Assembly: GCA_965235115.1 (NCBI GenBank)
Contig: OZ249443.1
Location: 4,402,001 to 4,466,000, forward strand
Direction of reading: 5' to 3'
From: Laetmonice hystrix
Lineage: Eukaryota
DNA length: 64,000 nucleotides
The first letter of the stretch is position 1, and each line of letters begins with the position of its first letter. Of the stretch, positions 47,661 through 47,793 are shown one piece after another. Both the position numbers and the translations under genes were made by a program. The notes beneath the pieces were generated by a model, which had not been told where the DNA came from, ran no database searches, and was given only the letters and a program-made list of their open reading frames with translations.

Positions 47661-47793
47661 GTCTTCAACTGGTTCGCTAACAAGCGAATCCGCTACAAGA
47701 AGAGCCTGAGCAAGGGTCAAAGGGAAGCGGAAATGTACCAGATGAAGACTGCCCCAGATCCCAAGCCACCCAGCATCCCAACAAACTCGCCAG
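47661..47793 (+). CDS. Pbx: Pbx helix-3 exon variant B (divergent, 133 nt)
   Basis: tgtccag|GTC TTC AAC TGG TTC GCT...CCA G|gttcga; [44 protein letters not shown]; phase 0 in, phase 1 out; donor is weak. Confidence 0.72.

Follow-up and report, generated by a model that had tools for sequence, protein, structure and literature searches.

How might an animal vary the DNA reading of a strongly conserved Hox cofactor? Pbx/Extradenticle (Exd) serves Hox proteins universally as a cofactor, few animal homeodomains are as conserved as its own, and models of Hox specificity take the PBC half-site reader as constant. The question is raised by a Pbx/Exd gene of Laetmonice hystrix, lying in a window of 64,000 nucleotides (nt) of contig OZ249443.1 (GenBank assembly GCA_965235115.1, positions 4,402,001 to 4,466,000, forward strand; positions below are those of this window). 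The gene has three variant exons, A, B and C, for the recognition helix (helix 3) of the homeodomain, and exon B (47661-47793, plus strand) has Phe46 and Ala50. Exon B is probably a functional alternative coding exon, the single choice from a mutually exclusive cassette, and maintained as such by selection, as judged from genomic sequence.

Exon B is an intact exon of 133 nt, with 44 codons and one further nucleotide, starting in phase 0 and ending in phase 1. Its acceptor at 47661 (...tctgtccag/GTCTTC) is preceded by a polypyrimidine tract and its donor (CCAG/gttcga) follows 47793, and these AG/GT borders match exactly the coordinates given in a preliminary description made from the letters of the window. 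That description had read WFGN as changed to WFAN and VSN to VFN relative to exon A, and the codons agree. Residue 50 is GCT (Ala) in exon B, GGT in exon A and GGG in exon C, and the second change, TCC in exon A versus TTC in exon B, is Ser46 to Phe46. The C-terminal stretch said to be remodelled does differ, exon B reading SLSKGQREAEMY at that place, and W48, F49, N51, R53 and the EA..Y pattern are unchanged as had been claimed, E66-A67..Y70 being common to A and B. The earlier count of about 10 synonymous-only and 10 replacement codons among the first 30 (B versus A) became 10 and 11 on recounting, with 9 identical.

Similarity of exon B to exons A and C by tblastn (E about 1e-10), and to PBX1 and Exd as the best phmmer matches in PDB (E 8e-8; 1B72, 1LFU, 4CYC, 1PUF; spanning helix 3 and helix 4), is far above chance. 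A word-index search with the B peptide among proteins of 24-77 residues gave no candidate, a blank without weight. The PBC helix-3 core is retained (N47, W48, F49, N51, K52, R53, I54, R55, K57 and K58), as are K62, Q64, E66, A67 and Y70 further on, and the near-invariant DNA-contact residues are all intact with Gly50 as the one exception. The fourth-helix stretch, K-G-Q-R-E-A-E-M-Y against K-x-Q-E-E-A-N-[LIM]-Y in the family, aligns to PBX1 helix 4 in 1B72 and 1LFU. Here Q64, E66, A67, Met69 (Leu, Ile or Met in relatives) and Y70, which we take to be the packing face, are kept, and E65R, N68E, A71Q and A72M are changes. E65R and N68E together look as if charges on the outward side of the helix had been paired anew, and N59S would leave a residue able to cap a helix. 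The tail of exon B is short and proline-rich (TAPDP..IPTNSP) and is without the KQE motif.

The host gene is read as the Pbx/Exd orthologue of an invertebrate from a series of exons on the same plus strand. A PBC-domain exon at 39635-39885 (ending ...EKYEQ; Pfam PF03792, 3e-24, match on 39583-39930) and a PBC-B exon at 42603-42793 (ending ...RSRFLDA-R, with an apparent GC donor next to it; PF03792, 4e-32, match on 42516-42797) together cover positions 50-181 of the profile, and the N-terminal part of the PBC domain was not located within the 64-kb window. Constitutive homeodomain exon 1 (45089-45224; Homeobox_KN, 2.9e-11) encodes helices 1 and 2 with the three-residue TALE loop extension between them and ends ...GITVSQ at a donor CAG/gtgcgt, which places the intron between homeodomain residues 44 and 45. 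It is followed by the helix-3 exons and by a constitutive exon at 49833-49948 (G-ASTYSMVPRPGSQ...SVPSQ), which takes phase 1 from A, B or C and is conserved in two related contigs, L001 and L006. The PBC domain, TALE loop and helix-3 core are shared with the PBC class (PBX1-4, Extradenticle), as apparently is the C-terminal fourth-helix motif, whereas exon B differs from that class in Ala50 for the hallmark Gly50, in Phe46 for the usual Ser46 and in changes of N59, E65 and N68. By these features the gene is of PBC class, and the isoform with exon B would be an atypical PBC homeodomain.

A six-frame scan of the window for WFxNKR exons gave exactly three, with no fourth copy found in it, hidden or decayed. 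Exon A (46997-47144, 148 nt) is the canonical variant and exon C (48488-48659, 172 nt) is marked by Phe56, by Gly63 and by a tail with ..PTKQE.. at its end; both are placed by translation and AG/GT borders, as is exon B, for which the pattern of constraint adds to the evidence. The lengths of 148, 133 and 172 nt are all 1 mod 3, and each exon alone reads in frame into 49833-49948. Premature stops arise when all three are skipped and with A+B, A+C, B+C or A+B+C. The frame into the conserved next exon is therefore kept by single inclusion only. The constitutive exons on either side have stronger donors (CAG/GTGCGT and CAG/GTGAGT) than any of the three (A, AAG/GTCAGT; B, CAG/GTTCGA; C, AAG/GTTTGA), among which that of exon B is no worse than that of exon C. 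The layout is the anatomy to be expected of a mutually exclusive exon cluster. In the splicing proposed, the exon ending ...GITVSQ at 45224 would be linked to 49833-49948 through a single one of A, B or C, with B probably spliced in in particular tissues or stages.

The origin of exon B was sought in contigs from other animals (L001-L014), among which the relatives of the cluster were found by similarity search of representatives. A cluster of two to four variants sits at the same intron position in six of them: L006 has A and C only, L001, L009 and L012 have A and two more, L005 has A and three more, and L002 has four exons. One C-type exon each was found in L010 and L011. The protein of exon A is identical over its first 29 codons in L001, L005 and L006 and has one difference in L002 (L69M), and A-type exons occur also in L009 and L012. 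C-type exons occur in L001, L002, L005, L006, L009, L010 and L012. The two types are told apart by codon, R55 being AGG in every A-type exon, together with Ala63, and CGN in C-type exons, together with Gly63. Exon B has CGC at R55 and GGT at G63. It shares Y56, L60, S61 and M69 with the middle exon of L002 (81% identity over 57 nt), its tail, TAPDP..IPTNSP, is like the part with which the C tail of L006 begins, and blastn ties it to C-type exons over 73-84 nt. From these codons, the tail and the blastn matches, exon B appears to be a derived exon of the C/middle type, and its treatment in the preliminary description as a variant of A did not hold, the same codons and tail placing it elsewhere. 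The exon in B's position in L001 has Ser46 and Gly50, so that Phe46 and Ala50 appear to have arisen in the lineage of the window itself. The introns beside exon B and beside this middle exon of L001 gave no sequence that could be aligned.

Substitutions in exon B indicate long retention as coding sequence. Against exon C of the window, synonymous divergence (dS) is 1.56 and non-synonymous divergence (dN) 0.26. Against the C/middle exons of L001, L002 and L006, the proportions of synonymous and non-synonymous differences (pS and pN) are 0.55-0.81 and 0.20-0.26, with a ratio of the non-synonymous to the synonymous rate (omega) of about 0.14-0.3. Synonymous sites are saturated between exon B and every relative, and the species themselves are apart by dS of about 0.6 or more in A exons, up to saturation in C exons. 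Exon B departs from the family majority in 3 of 18 near-invariant columns (G50, N59 and E65) and in 8 of 12 variable columns, and no stop or indel interrupts its 44 codons, with borders and phase intact. A copy neutral for so long would be unrecognisable by now, and the intact state of exon B thus argues that it has been kept as coding sequence.

The pairing of a changed residue 46 with Ala50 is found in other Pbx lineages as well. Gly50 is present in 152 of 154 sampled PBC helix-3 sequences, and the rest of the helix-3 core is invariant or nearly so. At residue 46 the 152 with Gly50 have S, A, C or N and in no case F, in a sample picked by similarity to exon B; L002, L008, L013 and L014 were found otherwise. 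The only other cluster with an Ala50 exon is that of L002, in which an extra copy at 6895-6966, upstream of its A exon, also has Phe46. The codons of this copy are A-type (AGG at R55), and F46, A50, T59, L60 and S61 were therefore apparently acquired separately. The degenerate pattern N-W-F-A-N-K-R-I-R-[YF]-K-K, run on metagenome contigs of the Joint Genome Institute (JGI), gave L008. On its minus strand (1070-1400 of the reverse complement) a Gly50 exon, INNWFGN...GIGY followed by a stop, is succeeded 212 nt later, after ...cacag, by a Phe46/Ala50 exon with a stop of its own. L008 is read as spliced and mRNA-like, since the frame from PBC to helix 3 is unbroken at 44/45, where the genomic contigs L004, L013 and L014 have an intron. 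The same exon is found in a related species in L003 (205-420); both read IFNWFAN, and pS and pN between them are 0.69 and 0.05. A spacing of about 30-85 nt separates the two terminal exons in this Pbx. This divergence marks the L003/L008 exon as a Phe46/Ala50 alternative terminal exon that is evidently under strong purifying selection in a planktonic (crustacean-like) Pbx.

A third form comes from marine metagenome contigs of Tara Oceans. In L004 the single helix-3 exon found on a short contig with a Pbx gene copy reads VCNWFAN (Cys46/Ala50), and in its near-twins L013 and L014 the reading is VSNWFGN, with differences from L004 also at a few residues of helices 1-2. L004 and L013/L014 would be two near-identical Pbx genes or alleles, and Ala50 would here be carried by a whole-gene copy and not by an alternative exon. 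It is tentatively proposed, as a possibility that we still hold doubtful, that a second kind of recognition helix, with Phe/Cys46 and Ala50, arose more than once in PBC proteins, by mutually exclusive splicing in this animal, by an alternative terminal exon in L003/L008 and by gene duplication in L004, each setting a hydrophobic patch over the central NN of the binding site. If true, one Hox cofactor gene could give Hox proteins two DNA-reading partners and shift target-site use per tissue. The recurrence of Phe46/Ala50 makes a concrete two-residue hypothesis. The term "selected", used of exon B in the preliminary description, is supported by saturated dS with pN of 0.20-0.26, by the intact frame, splice sites, phase and DNA contacts, and by the occurrence of Phe46/Ala50 in other Pbx lineages, one of them clearly under purifying selection.

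Residues 46 and 50 both face the DNA from helix 3, with one turn of the helix between them, and Phe46 with Ala50 would form a small hydrophobic patch where PBC proteins are normally without a side chain. The patch would lie over the two bases 3' of the TGAT half-site, which are the central NN of Hox-PBC sites (TGATNNAT), and the B isoform would then change the composite-site preference or the affinity of Pbx-Hox complexes. A changed DNA specificity or Hox/Meis cooperativity of the B isoform can reasonably be expected on these grounds. Piper et al. 1999, by the title under which PMC3460184 cites them, reportedly showed that the fourth helix of PBX1 has a part in the formation of Hox-PBX complexes. 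Bases 5-6, immediately 3' of the core, are contacted by residue 50, which directly affects specificity, with subtler effects of residues 43 and 46 (PMC3460184). Position 50 is Gly in PBC and Ala in IRO and MKX (PMC4901127, Table 1), in agreement with the diagnostic value that the preliminary description had given to Gly50 for PBC and to Ala50 for IRX/MKX. Ala50 is thus a likeness between exon B and these classes (PMC4901127), but exon B has a PBC helix 3 and lies downstream of a PBC domain. An IRX/MKX-like reading of exon B is excluded by K52-R53-I54-R55, which is of PBC type, and by the PBC domain upstream. IRO and MKX have N-A-R-R-R at positions 51-55 and are not known to have a PBC domain.

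It is rather unlikely, in our estimate, that exon B is spliced and translated with Phe46 and Ala50 silent for DNA recognition, the isoforms being set apart instead by their tails or by the exposed surface of helix 4, as in stability, localisation or the binding of partners. The base-contacting PBC residues (N51, I54, R55, and R53, K57 and K58) are indeed unaltered, Gly to Ala is the smallest possible gain of side chain, and the tails are what differs most among the three exons, that of B being short and proline-rich and that of C carrying KQE. The coupling at positions 46 and 50 speaks for a role at the DNA interface: Gly50 is kept in 152 of 154 sequences, and Phe46 is seen only alongside Ala50, a tight association on the DNA-facing side of the helix, and residue 50 is a classic specificity determinant (PMC3460184, PMC4901127).

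Several observations weigh against exon B being a maintained functional exon, and some of them are also what would be seen if it were a relic, a once functional middle exon now skipped or being lost, with Phe46, Ala50, Ser59 and Arg65 as early decay. Omega of exon B, at about 0.14-0.3, is 3-10 times that of A and C (at most 0.05), and relaxed constraint would likewise predict the changes at G50, N59 and E65, which are almost invariant in the family. The middle exon is absent from the close relative L006, in which no remnant of exon B was found, and in L001 the exon in its place is very divergent and has a proline at 69, where helix 4 would be, so the middle slot is evolutionarily labile. A query of a run index with exon B returned three runs from one sample, with contiguous genomic contigs over 45000-50999, no splice joints and no RNA run; since A and C were not run as controls, the lack of an RNA match is uninformative rather than negative. 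As to recurrence, the B-like exon of L002 has a stop after 24 codons, and a 49-nt form of it, with the donor TTAA/GTAAGG, would keep phase 1. In a maximum-likelihood tree of 18 helix-3 exons (87 nt) a clade of the window's exon B with this exon is neither supported nor rejected (approximately unbiased test, p-AU 0.41), and with the exons thus unresolved by the tree, convergence rests on a few diagnostic codons.

That exon B is such a relic is nonetheless judged unlikely. No stop or indel has entered its 44 codons, the AG/GT borders, polypyrimidine tract and phase are intact, and 15 of the 18 near-invariant columns have been spared. The same two substitutions are found in other lineages, in one of them at omega of about 0.03, and random decay does not predict such recurrence. 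Among the variants listed in the three genomic runs none lies in exon B, nor in exon A, while indels and single-nucleotide polymorphisms are present in the flanking introns, a comparison of low power from one individual. That exon B is instead non-productive and regulatory, its inclusion serving to tune the amount of Pbx mRNA, as when joint inclusion with A or C triggers nonsense-mediated decay, with its coding content irrelevant, is very improbable: any two cassette exons together do give premature stops, but B alone is in frame and the constraint is at the protein level, with saturated synonymous sites, low non-synonymous change and homeodomain residues kept.

The known difference between the isoforms PBX1a and PBX1b lies downstream of the homeodomain and leaves the recognition helix untouched (see also PMC4755740). 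A search of the open-access literature gave no account of a Pbx/Exd gene with alternative exons for this helix. The nearest precedent is Meis of the annelid Capitella teleta, in which exon 9 is duplicated and its copies are mutually exclusive (PMC3140891). In both genes the exons are tandem and homologous, of the same phase, of a length that is not a multiple of 3 and with their own splice sites, and both genes encode a TALE-class Hox cofactor. Here, unlike in Meis, it is the DNA-recognition helix that is duplicated, in two to four variants across species, one of which alters residue 50, and the case is known from genomic anatomy. Tandem-duplicated mutually exclusive exons are well known as such; what is new is the recognition helix of a Hox cofactor as the target, with residue 50 changed. 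If such exons are used, the PBC side of Hox-PBC complexes would itself be under splicing control in a large invertebrate group.

Choice within the cassette may involve RNA pairing with exon A. A conserved intronic element at 46608-46641 (plus strand) repeats, in inverted orientation, part of the first 37 nt of exon A (TGTACCTGATAC..ACCAAACCAG), and lies about 390 nt upstream of that exon. With its partner in exon A, 47006-47033, it forms a duplex of about 22 base pairs with the helices TGTACCTGATAC and ACCAAACCAG, and it is kept in L001 (95% identity), L006 and L007. The element and its A-exon partner are at 7905 and 8365 in L001, at 6727 and 7163 in L006, and in L002 at 6628 with two partners, 6920 and 7649. 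A G to A change in the element of L002 stands exactly opposite a C to T change in the A-type exons of L002, a compensatory replacement of G-C by A-U. Duplex energies with A-type exons are -36 to -41 kcal/mol (z -5.5 to -7.8, four species), whereas B and C pair no more stably than shuffled sequence. Such a duplex would bury the 3' splice site region of exon A and shift the choice to B or C.

Competing RNA pairing controls the mutually exclusive clusters of Drosophila Dscam1, 14-3-3 zeta and MRP1. As in these systems, a conserved intronic element pairs with part of the cluster and shows compensatory substitution across species; the difference is that the element here repeats coding sequence of one variant, exon A, in inverted form, and that exon A is the only one with which it pairs. 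No docking/selector series for A, B and C was found, the only pairings for B being short ones between purine and pyrimidine tracts that were put down to chance. Both B and C are preceded by a GGTGTCTTGTC-like motif, which was considered as a docking/selector element and rejected, as it looks like an ordinary U/G-rich polypyrimidine tract.

The duplex with exon A may also account for the A-type AGG at R55 and for the low synonymous divergence of A exons. Just 3' of exon A, reiterated (C)AAGGTCR motifs, which are copies of its 5' splice site, are found at 47143-47350, and likewise at 8485-8720 in L001 and at 7760-7790 in L002. Ten of the 48 AGGTCR sites of the window fall within 200 nt, L001 has seven, and L002 has three in tandem. 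The cluster may be a decoy or U1-binding array, and the motif also matches nuclear-receptor half-sites.

Some further features of the locus were recorded. The intron after the PBC-B exon seems to begin with GC at 42794 (AAG/GCCAGT) where L005, L009 and L010 have GT, and is probably a GC-AG intron. The PBC-B exon itself (42603-42793) is undivided in the window, and L001 (2591-2710 and 3268-3392) and L006 (2521-2616 and 2815-2938) have it in two pieces with an extra intron after ...RTRPIAPK, a case of an intron lost or gained between relatives. Contig depth at 49220-49570, within the intron that follows exon C, is raised roughly 10-25-fold with many loose ends in all three genomic runs, and this segment is a high-copy repeat or a fragment of a transposable element. 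Directly 5' of the acceptor of the 49833 exon, a 37-nt unit is tandemly duplicated at 49753-49826, perfect to 97%. Three non-coding blocks, at 44608-44658, 44766-44866 and 50198-50318, have 79-93% identity to L001 and L006 despite near-saturated synonymous sites, and make candidates for conserved regulatory elements in the introns around the homeodomain exons.
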